From assembly GCA_020536535.1 (NCBI GenBank), contig JAHLWZ010000127.1:1-64000 (forward strand): a stretch of 64,000 nucleotides of DNA, read 5' to 3'. The position numbers were made by a program, and so were the translations under genes. The notes beneath the pieces were generated by a model. The model worked only from the letters and a program-made list of their open reading frames with translations, was not told the origin of the DNA and ran no database searches. Each line of letters begins with the position of its first letter. Position 1 is the first letter of the stretch. This DNA comes from Pelomyxa schiedti (taxonomy: Eukaryota; Protista; Evosea). Below are positions 30,183 through 38,734 of this stretch, piece after piece.

Positions 30183-32564
30183 CTATCCTCTGGAAATGTG
30201 CCTGCCTGGGAAGTCCAATGGGGACAATAAGCCTATCACAGTGTGTAACAGTGTGGCTGGTAGTGATCCAAGAGTGGAGGTCACCAGTCTATCTTTTTCT
30301 ACCAGTGCAGAAACAGGTGTTTGCTCAGTCCTGGCCAATCGATTCCAGCACAGAATTACGGTTTTGAGAACGACCAGGAACCACTTGGGGAAAAACTGCC
30401 TATCAGCAGGGCTCCATGTGGCTGGACTTGTGAGGTGATGCAGGCATTTTGGCAAAATAAGAAAATCCTGGGGCAGTGTGGCGCCATGACACCAAAGCAA
30501 CTTGACCACTTTGGAATTGCCTGCAGACAGAGCCTCTATTAGTGTGTCCTTGTCAAATTGTGCCCCAAATTCAAGAAGAAGGGATATGGCCTGGAAGGAG
30601 TCAGTGGTTCTGACAAAGTACTTCAGCAATGGTAAGGAAACTGGGAGGTTTGGGTCAGCACCCATTTCCAGCAGCATTCGGGCACAAGGTAAACTATGTT
30701 GACTTCTACAGCACAGGCCAAGTGGGGTGAAATAGTCTCTTGTATCAAATGACTGAGAGCCTTCATTTAACTGACAGTCAAGGGTCAACCCATGATTGGC
30801 AAGGAGTTCCCCCACAAGAGGCTTGTTTCCAGCTTTAAGAGCATATTGGAACAGCCTGGTTTTATTGTTCACATCCACGGAAATGAAAAAGTCAACCAAA
30901 GAGTTATTGCTCAAATCAGAGAGTTCAATCAACCGATGGTGGATTTCTGAGTGGTTCTGGAGCATTGGAAGCAAGATGGACGTGAGCTCACCCCTCTTAC
31001 TTGAGATCAGTGCAGTGGATATCATAACCGAGATAAGCTCATACAAAGATATATCACTGTCACAAGCTTGTGTTATTGTGTACTCTTGGCCGCCCCTGTT
31101 TTGGTTGACCTTCTTCCATGTGATCGTTTTGGGTGCCTCCTTCCAAGTTTCGTGGTATTTGGCGGAAATAAACTCATAGAAGCTCGCCATTGCAGATGAG
31201 TCAGCCAAAGTGAATGAGGATAACTTGAGGAGGGATCCAAGCAAATATAAAATATGAATACTGTGTGGTGCACCAAAAAGAAATCTTAGGGCTTGGTGGA
31301 AGAGTTCGTCCAAGGGGGAATGGTTCAAAATCTTGTTGAAGGGAAATGGAAAAAAAGCGCGGGATAGAATCTGAAATGTGGGGCTTTCAAAGTTGGAGAA
31401 AAACCCAAGAGCCTTCAAAAGCAGATTTTCAGGGATACTGGTATTTGTAAGGCTCAGAGGTATAAGTACCAATGCGGCGCAACCAGGATGCTGGGTATCT
31501 CTGAGGCCAAATTCTACCAACTTATCTTTTGTAGAACCATCCACAATACAGAAATCTGTGAGAACACTCAAAAAGATTTTAAATAGCTCGTGGTCCATCT
31601 TAGAGAACTCGGGAAGTCTTGGTAGTAATGATTCCACCAGTCTTGCAGTGAGACTGAGGGCAACTGTGCCCTTGCCCTCTAGGGTAGACCAGAACTTAAC
31701 GGTTTGTAGGATGTATAAATTTGAAGTCCCAATGAGATTCACGACCCAGTCCGTAGCTGTTGCGGTTAGTAGCGGCAGTTCCGCACTTGTTTGCATAATG
31801 GTGGTACACAGCCCTACGCATGGGACATAGTATTCTGAACACATAGGAAGTAGCCTCTGTACAATCTCGGTGAGAGCCGTTTCGTACGGGACTAGGAATT
31901 TCCGGAAGTTTGAAAACCACAGCATGGCCCAGAAGGAGGTAAGTTGTGGTCCCCTGAAAATTGCTCCAGATGCAGAAAGGATATGAATATCAGTCACCCA
32001 GGTGTCACAAATCACCTTCCTCCACGAATCGGGAAAGTTCCTTGTGAATATATCAGGCATAAAATCATCAGCCATAAGTAGAATCGTAGGAGTCAAGTCA
32101 ATAGAGAGAGCACCCAGCAGCTCAGTATCAAAATACCCACGCTCTGACAACTGAAGCACAAATTCCAACACGAACCTGGTAGCTGAAGTACCTGAATAAG
32201 ACAGGACAGCATCACGTGCCAGCAAAGCCAATTTCCTGGAATCATCCCCCTTTCTGCTATTAGTGCCTCCAGTCTTATTTACAATTATCCACTTTTCCAC
32301 ATCCACAACAATTCTCTCTCCATTGCTGATTCCACAATCATCATCAGGAGCAGAACAACAACAAATACTACTGGGACTCAGTTTTTCAAGTGCATGAAGA
32401 TAATTGGTCATAGTTTCGGTATAAATTGACCTCAGAAGGGCCGGGAGTGCCCGCATTGTGGGATGAGCGCGCCCCACAGCATCCAGAGCCTCGAATGCAG
32501 TTGGACATTTGATTTGGTCAAGGGCTCGTAAAAGTGTTCTTCTATGAGCAGGCTCCATCTCCAA
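30183..32564 (-). CDS. Intronless 793-aa protein with helical N-terminal region, ankyrin repeats and a C-terminal F-box/SOCS-like motif
   Basis: Single uninterrupted ORF. Ankyrin-like LFQYALKAGNKPLVGELLANHG, FTPLGLCC...CARMLLEMGADPN and TLIEALSAGNSKVVKLLWCHGA. C-terminus TWSPADRQFFPKWF...LGSLPATLLHTVIGLL. Confidence 0.8.
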   Translation of the reverse strand: MEMEPAHRRTLLRALDQIKCPTAFEALDAVGRAHPTMRALPALLRSIYTETMTNYLHALEKLSPSSICCCSAPDDDCGISNGERIVVDVEKWIIVNKTGGTNSRKGDDSRKLALLARDAVLSYSGTSATRFVLEFVLQLSERGYFDTELLGALSIDLTPTILLMADDFMPDIFTRNFPDSWRKVICDTWVTDIHILSASGAIFRGPQLTSFWAMLWFSNFRKFLVPYETALTEIVQRLLPMCSEYYVPCVGLCTTIMQTSAELPLLTATATDWVVNLIGTSNLYILQTVKFWSTLEGKGTVALSLTARLVESLLPRLPEFSKMDHELFKIFLSVLTDFCIVDGSTKDKLVEFGLRDTQHPGCAALVLIPLSLTNTSIPENLLLKALGFFSNFESPTFQILSRAFFPFPFNKILNHSPLDELFHQALRFLFGAPHSIHILYLLGSLLKLSSFTLADSSAMASFYEFISAKYHETWKEAPKTITWKKVNQNRGGQEYTITQACDSDISLYELISVMISTALISSKRGELTSILLPMLQNHSEIHHRLIELSDLSNNSLVDFFISVDVNNKTRLFQYALKAGNKPLVGELLANHGLTLDCQLNEGSQSFDTRDYFTPLGLCCRSQHSLPCARMLLEMGADPNLPVSLPLLKYFVRTTDSFQAISLLLEFGAQFDKDTLIEALSAGNSKVVKLLWCHGATLPQDFLILPKCLHHLTSPATWSPADRQFFPKWFLVVLKTVILCWNRLARTEQTPVSALVEKDRLVTSTLGSLPATLLHTVIGLLSPLDFPGRHISRG

Positions 32565-32968
32565 ACAACAAACGCCGCACTTCCAACTTGGATGACTGAA
32601 GTAGCGAGCGGACTGTCAGGTTTTTATCTGGGCCACTTGGGTAGGTGCTCGTATGTGTAAGAATAGAAGAGGAGCACACTCGCCTGGAGAGTGCCACTGA
32701 GCGATGGTGATGAATGACTTTTCTTGGACTGTGTTTGAAGTCTGTTCGCCATCTTCAACTGTTCTTCCCCGAATGTGATTTGTCTGCTCGTTTTCCGTTA
32801 TGCTTTTGTGCGCTTCCCAAGGAAAGGACCAAGGGCGGCATCGCGGAATGGAAAACACAAGAAGCGCGGCCACTTTTTCGTTTGTTACTGTTTGCTTGTA
32901 CAACAGGGCGTGCCGTGTCTTCGTGGGCCAGTTGAGAAGTGAGGCCTCTTTTGCGGAAGGTTTGGTTG

Positions 32969-35900
32969 ATGATGAGTTTGAGGATCCATGTCTTGCGTGG
33001 TGTGGTTTTGGTAGGGTTGTTTCTGAATTGTGGGATCCTGAGAGGCTGTGAGGCTGGAGGTGTTGTTGGGGGCCAATGGGGCATTTGTACACTGGAGGGT
33101 CTGTTGTCTTTGGCAAAGCAAACTGTGGCTGAAATACAGCCCCCTTTTGTGCTCATGGAAAATGTGCTCCTTTTTTTTTTTTTTTTTTCCCTTTTTTTAC
33201 TGTAATATGTGTTAATACATTTCTTTCTTGTTTAGTACCTGAATGTGGCTGCTTCGATGTTTTTATTCATTGATGAAAACGCGGACACTGTGGAAGTTGA
33301 CCTGCAGAAACGATACTTGTACGACCACATCACAATCATGCCTAATAGCAGCCAAATTGCTGGAAGCGGTGTGGATCAAACCAATGATCGAACCCTTGAG
33401 GTTTTAATCACTTTTACCTGTTACTGCTTCCTAACTCAATGCAGAGTTTCGTCAGGCGAAGTGCTCTTGCTGCGGTACCAGTGAATAGGTCCGCACCCTG
33501 TGAGTGCAACCCCTATTGGTTAATGTTTCTGGAGAAGTACTACACAGGTTCCGTAATTGATTACTTTGCTCTTCTATCTTCCATTAATTTATCATAGATG
33601 AACTTCTAGGAGTTCCCTGCGAGAGTTATTGCTCTACAAGTAAGATGTTGGCTCTTGGGCGGCATTTTGGGGGAATTTATATTCCAGTATCAGTGTCAAT
33701 TGATGAGGCATTAAGAATGTGGGGAATTTCAAATGGGGATTCCATTACGTATTTTTCCAATGCTACTTGTACACACTAATCGACATTAGGACAACTGTGT
33801 ATCCCTGGAAATTGTGGAGATCCTTGGGCACTACAATTGGTGACTATATCAAGCAGCCGGATTACCAACCGCCATTCTGGCCCATGTTTACACAAGAAGC
33901 AAATCCCACAAACAAGATCATGTGGACTGATCCGTACTACAATGCACTGGGTACGGTTTTTTTTTTTTTCTTCATTTTCTCTGTTCCATCTCATACCATA
34001 CAGAACTGATGATTCAAGTTGGGAAACAGATTTATGGAAAGAATAACACATTCATTGGTGCGTCTGGAATCACTCTCTCAATGCAAAAAACTACTGCACT
34101 GATGACCAGTGTAGTGTCAACACCAGGAGGTAGTTCCCACTAAACCTAACAAATAATCGTTGACTTCAATAACGTTTCGAGGTTTTGCAATGCTTGTATC
34201 AGACAGTGGCTATGTAATCTCCTCTGACCTTTGGGCCTTTCCTTTGCTGTTTGGTTCATCTTTTAACTTCTCGGCTCGGACTATTCCATCTCTTACACAA
34301 GCACAAGCGAATTTCACTGCAGTACTTTCTTTACCCTTCCTACAAGTGCTAACCGTAAATATAGCTCATAAATGATTTGAAGGTGTATGGTTATAATGAA
34401 ATACTTTTCAATGGGACAATGTGGCTCTTTGCACACCATCCTCTTGAGTTACTTCCCTGGACTGTTGTTGTTGCTGTTCCCTCCTCTGAAATCCTTTCTG
34501 GTTTGTGCTACTTGTTTTCCATCATGAGGTGATGAAAAAAAAGGAGTGATGTTTACTGTGAACCCCACAACTGTGCAACTATCTTCCAGTGGATCAGTTG
34601 TGTTCACCATTTCACTGAATAATACGGGTGTTATCCCCGTTTATGTCACATTTGAAAATCCCTCTTTGATTTTACCAAGTAAAAGAACCCACCAAATACA
34701 TAAAATGGGACTATCTAACCACTCCAAAACAGGCAACTTTTCTGAAGATATTCTACTCCAGGGCGGGGAGAGTGTCACTCTTACCTTTCACTTCGATGGG
34801 GACCTCCCTTATTCGAATAGGTTATGGTTTCAAGTTAGAGATGCTGTCACTGCTTTCAGCTTGTGCTTTAACTCACGGTATTCTGTTCTTGTTTCTATTA
34901 CAGGTGCGTTTCTACTTGCCAAATGAAAAAATTCACTCCTAACAGCAGATTCAATGGTACTCATTGCAAGTATCTCTGTTGGGGGTGCAGTTGCATTTCT
35001 TTTCTTTGTCACAATAGTTGTACTTTTACTTGTGATTCGTCATTTCAAACGCCAGGTCTTTCCAATTTTTAAAACTGGTTTCTAAACAAATGTCTGGATG
35101 TCTCGCAGGTAGCTGTTCTTTCTCAGCCCCTTACAAGTGCCCAACTGTTCAAAACTCCAGCTGAAGCTGCAATAAAGAAACTCACTGCAATCATGAACAA
35201 AAAATCCAGTTAGTATCCTCCAAACTTAGAAGTAAACCAATATGATCTTTTTCCCCAGAGCTCGAAGCCGATGACAAACTTTCCATTGAGAAAATAATCC
35301 AGTTGATTGCCACCAATGGGCTGCACAGAGTTGATTACATTGCCCAGAAGAAAGCTTGCCTTGCAAGTCTGTGGACATTTTCTCACCTTCATCAGTTCAT
35401 GTTCAATGTCAGATTTTGATTCTGAAGTCAATGCCTACTTGATGGAACAGCTTATTTCTCCTCAAATGAAACCTGAAGACAGTGAAGAAGATTTAAAAGC
35501 ACTGTTATATGCAGGGTGTGTGCATTGGCAAGTTGCTTATAATAATTGTCTCAGAGATAACGCTTCAATTGAACCAGTGATCACCAGTAGTGTTGATGAA
35601 TGGGACTTCTCTGCCTTCGAATATTCTCCTGGTACGCCTGTTTAACTTCTCTTACATTTTTCTAATTATCACAACAAGATCAAATTCTGGGCAAGATAGT
35701 GCCCCCTATTTTCCAGAGGCACGGGTTGTTTGCCAAGTTTAACATTGAGGAAAGCACTCTGATGTCATGGTTGGATGGAGTCACACGAGGGTTCACCTCT
35801 TGATAATCTAAGCAATGAATTTTATGCTACACAGATACCTCAGCAACCCCTATCACAATGTTATTCATGCTGCTGATGTATTACAAGCCTGTCACGTTAT

Positions 35901-37323
35901 GTTGCTTAACTTGGTTAATCACGAACTCCTTTCCCCTGTGGCTGTTTTGAGTGTCTTGTTTAGCGCCATTATCCATGACTTGGCACACCCTGGAGTAAAG
36001 TATGCCCTATCTCCAGAATCTCTTCTTTTCTTTTACATTGACTGACTCGCCCAGTAATAATTTTCTTTACCGTATTCTTGATCCCTTGGCACTGACATAC
36101 AATGGAATTTCAGTACTCTTTCCAAAACTGAGTGTGCCTTGCTTAGTTTATACAGATTTTGGAAAACATGCATGTACACGAAGCTTTTGAATTAACACTT
36201 CACGGTGGCTCCAATTGGCTTTCCTTTTTTTCCCCAGTAAGGAGCTGAGGAGAAAGATTTTAGTTCATTGACCTTCAAAAAAGGACGAATTCCTGGACTT
36301 CCACAAGCAAGTAACGAGCTTGGTCCTTACCACTGAGTACCTCTATTTACCTTCTCCAAGGTAATTTATGGCATTCATTCTTTTTCCCAGTATGTCAAAA
36401 CACGTGGAGCTACTGAGTTTTTTCAAGACCAGGCAGTCTGTTGACGGCTTCAATTTATCAAACAAAGTATGTCCTCGTACTACATAATGGCCGGTGTAAG
36501 CCGACTCTGCATAGAGTGATACAAACAGTGTGCTTCAAATGATTCTCAAAATGTCCGATATTTGCAACCAAACGCGGGCGTGGAGCACTGCCTCGAGATG
36601 GACAACCCTCGTTGTTGAAGAGTGCTTTCAGCAAGGTGATCAAGAAGAAAAATACAACCTCCCCAAGTCCCCATTCATGGATAGAGACGCGCCGCACATA
36701 GCCAAATGCCAGTGCACATTTATCCAGTATGCCAAACATTCCCAACGTCCCCCCCACCCCCATCAGAACCCATTATGGGCCCACTCACCCCAAACCCCAA
36801 CAGGTTCGTTGTCTCGCCACTCCTGGAAAGCGTTTCCAAGGTAATCGACCCACGACTATCCGCCGCGATGAAGAGCAACCTGTCGTCCAACCTCACGCAC
36901 TGGCAGTCCCAGCAAAGCCAGGCGCCCACGCCCTCGCACTCGCGGCCGCACTCGCCCCCGTCGTCGTCGTCGGCGCACAACGCTCTGGCGGCCGCCACCC
37001 CGACGCACACCAACCCCGGCAGCAGCCGCACGACCCACTCGCACTCGACGACCCCCACGCACACCAGGGGGACAGTCACGCCGGCCGCGGCAGCCACGTC
37101 CCCTGCTACTTCCGCGAGGGCGGGGGCTGTGCCGATGGCATTGCAGGCGAACGCCCACAACGCCGCGAGTGCGGCTACTCTGCTGCCGGAATCGGCTGTG
37201 GCTGCCTCTGGTGTGAGTGGGAGGATTGGGACTGGGACCGGGACACACAAGAACAACAACAGCAGTGGTGGTGTACTGTCACGTGGCGCCAGTTATCTCA
37301 CCTCTGGTTCTGGGAAACACTAG
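32969..37323 (+). CDS. Receptor-like class I cyclic-nucleotide phosphodiesterase (signal peptide, dCache sensor, Ig-like domain, TM helix, PDEase_I)
   Basis: Signal peptide MMSLRIHVLRGVVLVGLFLNCGILRGCEA. Cache-like IMWTDPYYNALG|ELMIQVGKQIYGKNNTFIGASGITL...FAMLVSDSGYVIS. TM ASISVGGAVAFLFFVTIVVLLLVI. PDE motifs YHNVIHAADV, SAIIHDLAHPG, LKMSDICNQTR, EECFQQGDQE and PFMDR...CQCTFI. Confidence 0.85.
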
Positions 37324-37549
37324 ATATTGGTTCGAACTAATACCGCGGCACTAGAAGAAGCAAGCTTGAAGCAATGCCAAGGGCAAATGCTCAATTTGAA
37401 CCATTCCTCTGATATTCCATTACAAACCCATAGAGAAAATTGTATTAACAAAAAAAAGAAGAGGATTGTTGGGTTCTGTTTTGCTGAGCTCAAACCCAAA
37501 CTGTTGGACTTCTCAATCGTAGCGAAGCTGATTCCAAGAAATCAGAAGA

Positions 37550-38734
37550 ATGGCGTCGACGAGCACAGTGGACGCGACCAACTTGGTCAATCAGGGAGCA
37601 GAGGCGGTTGTGCCCTGTTTCGTTTATTCGTATTATTATGGGTTTTCTTTGTTTTTTTGCTTTCGTTTAACGAGGTGTAAACGCAGAGGGTGTACCGTAT
37701 AAGACAAGACGAAAAAAATGTCATCGTTAAGGAGAGATTCTCGAAGAAATACAGACACCCAACTTTAGATGCTTTGTTGACAAGGAAACGCATCAATTCG
37801 GTTTGCTTCTTATATTATTTTAAAATTTCGCGCCATAACAACCCAATCGTTAACACATAGCATAACACCACTCACCAATATGGGATTTAAAGGAAGCCAA
37901 GTGTATGGCACGAGCGAAAGGGGCTGGTGTGGACACACCCACAATTTTCCGCGTGGACAAACACACGTCCCGTTTGTATATGGAAGACATTGGAACTCTC
38001 TCAGTGAAGCTGTTCTTATGGGCCAACTGCTCCACACCCAATCCACTTGCCAGAGCCACCGCTGCTACAAGTTCCTCGGTTTGTAGTACTGGCAACACCA
38101 CTTCATCTGCTGCTGTGACCCCAAACAATTCCGCCGCCACAAATTCTAATGCTACTTACAGCCCAGGTTTGCACACAACCTCACGCAAATTCCTTTTTCT
38201 CATTTTGCGTATTAGATTGCCTTCGGATATGCCAAGATATTGGACGTGCAATTGCCTTCATGCATACTGTTGACGTCGTGCACGGCGATTTAACAACATC
38301 TAACTTCTTACTGAGAACACCAGAAAACACAATTGTATTCGAGGCCTTTCATTCCTATATTCCAGCCTCACAATTACAATGTTCGTTTCATTTTGGTGAC
38401 AAGGTTGCAATTGATTTTGGTCTGAGCTATGTTTCATCATTGATTGAAGACAAAGCTGTAGACTTGTATGTTCTTGAGCGAGCCTTCCTGTGCACCCACC
38501 CTTCATCTGGACCACTTGTATGGCTCCGTTATCAATACATGTTAATTAACCTACTCTTCTTTGTTTCGCCAATAGTTTTCACAAGTACTTGAAACATATG
38601 CTAGTCAATACAAACAAGGCCCTGCAGTACTGCAGAGACTAGAACAGGGTATGTACTTTCAACGGTTCTCAAATACAATCTTACTCTCTGAAATAGTCCG
38701 TCTCAGAGGAAGGAAAAAACTTGCTTTTGGGTGA
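37550..38734 (+). CDS. BUD32: KEOPS complex kinase Bud32/TP53RK
   Basis: NQGAEA, VKERFSKKYRHPTLD, MARAKGAGVDTP, VVHGDLTTSNFLL, IDFGLS, EDKAVDLYVLERAFLCTHP, and C-terminal VRLRGRKKLAFG*. Confidence 0.93.

Follow-up and report, generated by a model that had tools for sequence, protein, structure and literature searches.

The genomic stretch analysed here, 64,000 nucleotides of the amoeba Pelomyxa schiedti (contig JAHLWZ010000127.1 of assembly GCA_020536535.1, positions 1 to 64,000 of the forward strand; hereafter the window), carries on its + strand, at 32969-37323, what is very probably a single real gene, spliced and expressed, whose product joins an extracellular Cache sensor, one transmembrane segment and a class I phosphodiesterase (PDE). 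The architecture suggests a receptor-type class I PDE that would work as a homodimer and break down cyclic AMP (cAMP) and/or cyclic GMP (cGMP) under the control of an extracellular ligand, a reading to which we assign a probability of about 0.6. In the usual picture of eukaryotic cyclic-nucleotide signaling, receptors regulate synthesis, and breakdown is regulated from inside the cell. If the proposed reading is correct, a cell-surface chemoreceptor with cAMP/cGMP hydrolysis as its direct output would add a missing element to this logic.

An initial annotation of the window, made by a model from the nucleotide sequence, had proposed a signal peptide, a dCache domain, an Ig-like domain, a single transmembrane helix and a class I PDE in one polypeptide. 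This order of domains is borne out by the gene model, by profile matches and by predicted folds, with the signal peptide and the membrane topology standing as predictions. Two qualifications apply: the dCache_1 score of the ectodomain lies below the Pfam cut-off, and the Ig-like domain is real but better described as another type of beta-sandwich.

Gene structure and expression

In a first six-frame reading, the + strand of the region was broken into a chain of short open frames, and the signatures of a PDE lay towards the 3′ end. In the gene model, 22 exons are separated by 21 introns of 41-77 nt, each with GT..AG borders, and the ATG at 32969 and stop codon at 37321-37323 match the bounds given by the initial annotation exactly. 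The coding length of 3297 nt yields a protein of 1098 aa with 0 internal stops. The genome searched for relatives was the P. schiedti assembly of 52,367,397 bases in 5337 contigs; the published single-cell assembly of this species is described as 52.4 Mb in 5337 scaffolds, with 7.43 introns per gene (PMC8887013).

Evidence for splicing came from contigs of two single-cell transcriptome runs, which were aligned to positions 32700-37600. RNA supports 16 of the 21 introns, 14 of them as joints within contigs (GT..AG, with 41-77 nt skipped) and two through loose contig ends (34501-34543 and 35632-35678, the latter with only 8 nt of upstream exon after a template-switch oligo). Supported introns lie in the ectodomain (33401-33444, 33749-33789, 34130-34181 and 34322-34364), in the beta-sandwich that follows it (34679-34732) and in the PDE region (35791-35834, 36113-36155, 36237-36283, 36337-36390, 36467-36514 and 36727-36803). 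The remaining five (33164-33235, 33548-33597, 33951-34003, 35367-35412 and 36000-36054) were placed by reading frame and GT-AG borders, and exon 1 has three candidate donor sites (33125, 33149 and 33164). Two further runs of unrecorded library type, possibly the source of the assembly, contain the stretch in unspliced form and show 0 of the 14 intron joints. Together, the joints in the RNA runs and the unspliced stretch in the other two runs indicate that the locus is transcribed and spliced.

The gene model could in principle be an artefact, either a merger of a secreted or membrane-bound Cache gene with a soluble PDE gene or a non-functional copy, and the two RNA runs do leave positions 35337-35622 without coverage, including one intron that is predicted only. 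Nevertheless, the frame stays open through this intron, which has a typical length of 46 nt, and a loose end connects exon 14 to exon 15, albeit by the 8 nt mentioned above. One RNA contig (X1 record 2) joins 34812-34899, 34942-35052, 35106-35208 and 35259-35336, so that a single molecule spans the end of the ectodomain, the transmembrane exon and the first exons of the linker. Exons 1 to 22 are collinear in ten paralogous copies (nine fetched loci), including a tandem pair on contig C612, and single Trinity transcripts of Mastigella eilhardi encode the ectodomain, the transmembrane segment and the PDE together. The notion of two separate genes, which would have overturned the initial annotation, is thus largely refuted, and the absence of stops and frameshifts, together with intact catalytic residues, led us to reject a pseudogene. 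We consider an artefact of either kind extremely improbable.

The gene is represented among public proteins by an entry named “Cyclic nucleotide phosphodiesterase [Pelomyxa schiedti]” (NCBI; 1013 aa; hereafter P0001), retrieved at 100% identity when exon 21 was compared by phmmer with 1.84 billion representative sequences. P0001 begins inside exon 2 and lacks aa 1-72 of the model, that is, exon 1 and a further 7 aa, as well as 13 aa in exon 14; it is otherwise identical. The difference in exon 14 reflects an optional in-frame intron of 39 nt (35516-35554) that is spliced out in P0001, and both versions are possible. Exons, loci or P0001 served as queries for all searches, fold predictions and complex predictions, so that these lack aa 1-72 and the 13 aa of exon 14 wherever P0001 was used, while the joined 1098-aa model was used in local scripts for frame continuity, hydropathy, counts of sequons and cysteines, and the comparison with P0001. 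Given what is missing from P0001, annotation of this receptor-PDE family probably under-calls signal peptides.

The 3′ end of the gene (36874-37323, aa 950-1098 plus the stop codon) encodes, by translation, a low-complexity tail rich in Ser, Thr, Pro, Ala and His, and RNA contigs cover this tail through to about 37486. Within it, RNA run X2 contains a 12-nt in-frame insertion, CACTCGCACTCG, behind position 37035. The same run differs from the assembly by single bases at 33893, 35758, 35895, 36203 and 37122. The insertion and the substitutions probably reflect allelic or cell-to-cell variation.

Cache ectodomain and membrane topology

The sensor region is encoded by exons 2-8 (33236-34500, aa 66-392). 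Read piece by piece, it is barely recognizable: an exon-by-exon Pfam scan of the ectodomain yielded one weak dCache_1 match (E 0.074, for a piece of exon 8), and a genome-wide search with the dCache_1 hidden Markov model missed the window's own ectodomain. Profiles of single exons from the paralogs, compared with the PDB, retrieved the DcuS PDC sensor with exon 6, at a sub-significant E of 0.3, but gave no match with exon 5, and a word-index search with the ectodomain of P0001 returned two paralogs only. With P0001 itself, dCache_1 matches residues 190-311 at E 3.2e-8 (profile positions 129-239 of 240), with a score of 33.8 bits against a Pfam gathering score of 45. The related family MCP-like_PDC_1 reaches E 4e-4, with 21.1 bits against a cut-off of 27.

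More sensitive comparisons point to the same superfamily. A family profile (A5), built from 22 aligned Archamoebae ectodomains with residues 1-425 of P0001 as the first sequence, was compared with the PDB, where the best 20 matches are all dCache sensors, among them 6iop (3.5e-11), 3c8c (8.9e-9), 5ave (1e-8), PctA (4.8e-5), 3lib, McpH and PctC; alpha2delta-1 comes next, at E 0.2. In a word search of a 5.8-billion-sequence database, the same profile retrieved bacterial dCache-HAMP-MCP proteins at E 3.8e-5. An AlphaFold (AF2) model of the ectodomain, with a predicted local distance difference test (pLDDT) score of 84.5 and a predicted template-modeling (pTM) score of 0.64, was matched by Foldseek at probability 1.00 and E 1e-7 to 4e-5 to mmHK1S-Z2/Z3, PscC, PctA/C, Mlp24/37 and McpH. 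Template-modeling scores to solved dCache domains range from 0.43 to 0.49 by target. VIA-align superposed the model on dCache structures with Z 10.4-10.9 over 141-194 residues, and the alignments span both dCache modules (PscC residues 45..320, 194 residues aligned, Z 10.8; mmHK1S-Z3, Z 10.9). The modeled sequence begins after aa 72 and so misses residues that would belong in part to the N-terminal helix. The cysteine pairs C139/C141 and C162/C166 are conserved, as is a core of W-T-D-P-Y, a beta-strand and G-y-v-I-s. These data support, at the profile and fold level, the assignment of the ectodomain to the Cache superfamily as a predicted divergent dCache domain. Because its dCache_1 score is below the Pfam cut-off although the E-value is significant, it is not filed as a curated member of PF02743.

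Between the sensor and the membrane, exons 9-10 (34544-34903, aa 393-495) encode a separate beta-sandwich. In the ectodomain model it corresponds to residues 320-425, which VIA-align superposes on a hydin-like ASH domain, MSP, VAP, the chaperones FimC, SfaE and Caf1M, and the ASH domain of CEP192, with Z 11-13 and a root-mean-square deviation of 1.9-3.0 Å over 95-105 residues. Support at the sequence level is limited to a Pfam ASH match at E 0.06. The domain that had been called Ig-like is therefore better described as a beta-sandwich of the PapD/MSP/ASH type. It is limited to the closest subfamily of relatives.

The transmembrane helix (34951-35037, aa 497-525) lies within exon 11 (34946-35055). 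It is the sole strong internal hydrophobic segment, with a maximum of 2.93 on the Kyte-Doolittle scale in a 19-residue window, and is followed directly by the positively charged cluster RHFKRQ. At the other end of the ectodomain, exon 1 (32969-33163) encodes a hydrophobic stretch preceded by n-region charges that resembles a signal peptide (predicted, aa 1 to ~29). The exon then runs into the N-terminal helix of the ectodomain, where Cys40 is conserved within a W-x-x-C-T-L-E-G motif. Residues 25-65 of this exon are conserved in nine paralogous copies, with E-values down to 1e-17, and several relatives regarded as orthologues carry canonical signal peptides. Eight N-x-S/T sequons and eight cysteines precede the transmembrane helix; six of these cysteines lie past the predicted signal peptide, and at least five of the six belong to motifs that paralogs or relatives share. 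A type I protein, with the Cache domain outside and the PDE inside, is favored because of the single transmembrane helix with its adjacent RHFKRQ, the N-terminal hydrophobic stretch, the placement of sequons and cysteines, the conservation of exon 1 and the signal peptides of relatives.

An inverted topology would turn the protein into an ecto-phosphodiesterase that degrades extracellular cAMP, with the Cache-like part in the cytoplasm. There is a precedent for an external catalytic domain in the class I PDE Pde4 of Dictyostelium, and P0001 has no signal peptide, the exon that would supply it being devoid of RNA support. Several of the features that favor the type I orientation argue against this arrangement: the positive cluster on the PDE side of the membrane, the sequons and conserved cysteines concentrated before the transmembrane helix, the conservation of the first exon in paralogs and the canonical signal peptides of orthologues. 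Moreover, solved dCache sensor domains are extracytoplasmic. On this evidence we rejected the inverted topology, which we regard as very unlikely.

Phosphodiesterase domain, linker and ligand gating

The catalytic domain spans exons 16-22 (35851-36873, aa 717-949). PDEase_I (PF00233; cut-off 24.8 bits) matches P0001 with 234.8 bits (E 1.4e-69) over profile positions 1-236 of 238, and two single exons suffice for matches at E 1.8e-14 and 1.2e-20 (54.5 and 74.7 bits). As the initial annotation had stated, the metal ligands are intact: His718, His722, His758, Asp759, His762 and Asp870 are all present in the numbering of the 1098-aa model, together with the invariant Gln921. The segments YHNVIHAADV, IIHDLAHPGV, MSDICN and KCQCTF have residue-for-residue counterparts in solved PDE4, PDE1B and PDE7A, alignments of the individual exons retain the YHNxxHAADV, HDxxHPG, SDICN and Q motifs, and the catalytic positions are invariant or nearly so across 26 relatives. 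In an AF2 model of residues 420-880, pLDDT exceeds 93 throughout the catalytic domain. Judged by its residues, the domain should be catalytically intact, with cAMP and/or cGMP as the presumed substrate. A preference between the two cannot be called, since the best solved matches span all specificities, from cAMP-specific (PDE7A, PDE4) through dual (PDE1B, PDE3) to cGMP-specific enzymes (PDE9).

A cytoplasmic linker of about 190 aa (35038-35790, aa 526-711, exons 11-15) connects the transmembrane helix to the catalytic domain. It includes a conserved motif, TPAE..I..L..I..K..L...D...L..II.LIA.N, at about 35148-35347 (alignment A6), and a poorly conserved stretch of low model confidence in exon 14. 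When residues 420-880 were modeled as a homodimer, the score was 0.79, compared with 0.00 for the best control; in a calibration on eukaryotic proteins, this mark was reached by 17 of 29 solved homodimers and by none of 30 solved single chains. At least 55% of contacts were common to the dimer runs, and the pLDDT of the partner chain was at least 79. The interface involves the PDE domain and, with heptad-like spacing, residues 473-522 of the P0001 linker. The linker motif is thus predicted to form a dimeric coiled coil.

The receptor reading links these parts into the following mechanism. A cleavable signal peptide would place the bacterial-type dCache sensor outside the cell, with the PapD/MSP-like sandwich as a spacer, and the protein would act as a homodimer. 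A small extracellular molecule would bind the membrane-distal Cache module, and the resulting displacement would travel via the transmembrane helices into the parallel coiled-coil linker. A change in the linker could then affect how the two PDE active sites of the dimer are shaped or how readily they are reached, such that ligand occupancy would directly set the rate of cAMP and/or cGMP hydrolysis beneath the membrane, whichever the direction of regulation.

Several results weigh against this reading. Gating is deduced from the architecture alone. The Cache assignment itself is less than complete, given the dCache_1 score below the gathering threshold and the moderate template-modeling scores to solved dCache domains, and pieces of paralogs read through two exons gave no Pfam match. 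The dCache_1AA family of amino-acid sensors is defined by a motif (AA_motif; Y121-x4-R126-x-W128 ... Y144 ... D173 in PctA numbering; PMC8915833), and a pattern search of P0001 and eight relatives found Y-x4-R-x-W in none of their ectodomains, which leaves no clue to the ligand. Exon 1, with the predicted signal peptide, and positions 35337-35622 have no coverage in the two RNA runs. In the AF2 monomer model of residues 420-880, the linker is helical but of low pLDDT and partly disordered (exon 14), and it forms no continuous signaling helix. Finally, the success of the dimer model may reflect memory of PDE structures, since PDE dimers have already been solved.

Some of these points would be equally expected of a membrane-anchored PDE that is always on. 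Its ectodomain, a degenerate Cache domain, would serve localization, adhesion, quality control or partner binding, and the enzyme would keep cAMP/cGMP low under the plasma or phagosomal membrane. An ectodomain that is divergent, below the Pfam cut-off and without the known amino-acid motif would fit such a role, as would the poorly ordered linker of the monomer model and the additional PapD/MSP-like domain, a type that often serves protein-protein contacts. We also know of no case in which the Cache domains of animal alpha2delta proteins gate an enzyme. However, within the family the ectodomains have diversified to 15-68% identity while the linker motif and the catalytic core are conserved, a pattern expected of a receptor repertoire. 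The linker motif between membrane and PDE is not only conserved but predicted to form a coiled coil, and the same genome joins Cache domains to cyclases, as bacteria do for regulated outputs. An always-on enzyme is, on balance, rather unlikely, and a ligand-gated receptor PDE remains our preferred reading.

Archamoebae family and known systems

The gene belongs to a large, undescribed family of receptor PDEs in free-living Archamoebae. In the P. schiedti genome, the ectodomain exon E5 has ten relatives, each with PDEase_I matches 2-3 kb downstream on its own strand; the closest paralog, on contig C812, shares 56-97% identity per exon. At least 15 such receptor-PDE genes are present, against the background of a very strong expansion of class I PDEs (PDEase_I matches at the level of exons number at least 155, are spread over about 60 contigs and in part form tandem arrays). 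Examples of such arrays are three PDE copies at C463:14936-23794 and the tandem pair on C612 (locus L014, C612:39200-49199). Outside Pelomyxa, all relatives that share the ectodomain come from Mastigamoeba balamuthi or Mastigella eilhardi, and the same build of ectodomain, transmembrane segment and PDE recurs in M. balamuthi gene models as well as in the single Mastigella transcripts.

A second receptor-PDE subfamily, which lacks the beta-sandwich, has dCache_1 matches upstream of PDE on contigs C912, C918, C158 and C577 (loci L004 to L007). In the first of these (C912:31013-34228, - strand), one exon of 306 aa contains both the Cache core and the transmembrane segment and scores 32.5 bits with MCP-like_PDC_1, against a cut-off of 27; PDEase_I (4e-31) follows about 0.5 kb downstream. 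Profile A5 recognizes this exon at 3e-11. A tblastn comparison of the loci of other Cache subfamilies (L001-L007) with the window gave no significant similarity, and the relation is visible only at the profile level.

Cache ectodomains are also joined to the synthesis side of cyclic-nucleotide signaling. Two loci, L002 (C751:61184-64537, - strand) and L003 (C516:17699-20926, - strand), combine a Cache ectodomain and a transmembrane segment with a class III adenylate/guanylate cyclase (dCache_1 E 1.9e-6 on L002; Guanylate_cyc 2.2e-8 for the Cache-cyclase genes), and thus mirror the receptor PDEs on the side of synthesis; the genome has about 28 cyclase loci overall. Free-living Archamoebae therefore appear to sense chemicals in the bacterial manner, through an array of one-component receptors that act directly on cyclic-nucleotide levels. 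It is tempting to extend this idea, although the extension is tentative and may well prove wrong: dozens of single-pass Archamoebae receptors with fast-diversifying dCache domains, perhaps of bacterial origin, would directly switch class I PDEs or class III cyclases. Metabolites outside the cell, such as those of prey or of syntrophic partners, would in this way control cAMP/cGMP in push-pull fashion, with no G proteins involved, and the gene in the window would be the first chemically gated class I PDE. The family also offers a practical way to learn what is sensed in sediments by anaerobic amoebae that carry symbionts, and if gating is confirmed it could provide modular, chemically switchable PDE tools that complement the optogenetic ones.

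Some observations concern other loci. L001 (C1162:13147-14897) is an open frame of 313 aa with an N-terminal transmembrane segment followed by dCache (dCache_1 E 2.4e-6), a bacterial-like layout without a signal peptide, and it runs off the end of its contig. A PDE relative of 1250 aa from M. balamuthi (P0002) has an N-terminal NMT1/THI5-like domain of the periplasmic-binding-protein type (3e-31), a PDEase_I match in three stretches and no transmembrane segment by hydropathy; it may be a sensor-PDE of yet another design, or its gene model may be a merger. In the window, the receptor-PDE gene is preceded by an open frame of 793 aa on the - strand (30183-32564) and followed, at about 37850-38600 on the + strand, by a multi-exon gene with a protein-kinase-like motif, VDVVHGDLTTSNFLL.

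The initial annotation had presented the chemosensory logic as one not known from model eukaryotes. A literature search for Cache or dCache domains with phosphodiesterases in eukaryotes or amoebae turned up no paper in which a Cache-class I PDE receptor is described. The novelty is nevertheless partial: a direct sensor-PDE is known, bacterial dCache proteins with cyclic di-GMP phosphodiesterases are routine, and the NCBI entry for the gene already carries the automatic labels PF02743 and PF00233. Bacterial dCache_1 receptors, which include PctA, Mlp24/37, Tlp3 and McpH as well as kinases, diguanylate cyclases, cyclic di-GMP phosphodiesterases and adenylate/guanylate cyclases, share the fold and sequence family of the ectodomain, as well as the logic of an extracytoplasmic dCache domain that acts through the membrane on a cytoplasmic second-messenger enzyme. 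In these proteins, however, two transmembrane helices flank the sensor, and the degrading outputs are EAL or HD-GYP domains that act on cyclic di-GMP rather than enzymes of the PDEase_I fold. The protein in the window, by comparison, combines a predicted signal peptide and one transmembrane helix with an extra domain of the PapD/MSP-like type; its gene has spliceosomal introns, and its presumed substrate is cAMP/cGMP.

GAF-regulated PDEs (PDE2/5/6/10/11) and receptor guanylyl cyclases are likewise dimeric, with an N-terminal small-molecule sensor that controls a C-terminal cyclic-nucleotide enzyme via paired linker helices, and the receptor cyclases also share the single-pass type I layout. 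Yet GAF sensors are intracellular, and receptor guanylyl cyclases make cGMP and use an ectodomain of the ANF-receptor type together with a kinase-homology domain. Among eukaryotic proteins, animal alpha2delta and CACHD1 also display an extracellular dCache_1 domain, and alpha2delta-1 is among the profile and fold matches of the ectodomain. The Cache domain of alpha2delta contains an inserted VWA domain and has no enzymatic output, whereas the Archamoebae proteins are joined to an enzyme. Gumerov et al. 2022 found a VWA insertion in all eukaryotic dCache_1 proteins that they identified, and the function of Cache domains in eukaryotes was then unknown. The Pfam scan of P0001 gave no VWA match, and the receptor-PDE family would be an exception to this published generalization.

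To our knowledge, the light-gated rhodopsin-PDE (Rh-PDE) is the only precedent for a cell-surface sensor coupled directly to cAMP/cGMP hydrolysis, and it is the closest known direct sensor-PDE. Rh-PDE of the choanoflagellates Salpingoeca rosetta and Choanoeca flexa is described as a rhodopsin joined by a helical linker of 76 residues to a C-terminal class I PDE that hydrolyzes both cAMP and cGMP (10.1101/2020.04.14.040642). The two designs agree in fusing a membrane sensor via a helical linker to a class I PDE, and hence in uniting receptor and effector in one protein. They differ in that Rh-PDE senses light with a multi-pass microbial rhodopsin, whereas the protein in the window has an extracellular dCache domain and a beta-sandwich in a predicted single-pass type I frame and presumably responds to a chemical; the linkers (about 190 aa against 76), the lineages and the origins differ as well. 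The Pfam scan of P0001 gave no match to a rhodopsin family, and only one internal transmembrane segment is present, which sets the protein apart from Rh-PDE. What distinguishes the Archamoebae family from all of these systems is that it pairs a bacterial-type dCache input with the class I PDE output of eukaryotes, in the frame of a type I receptor, and has expanded within the free-living members of the group.

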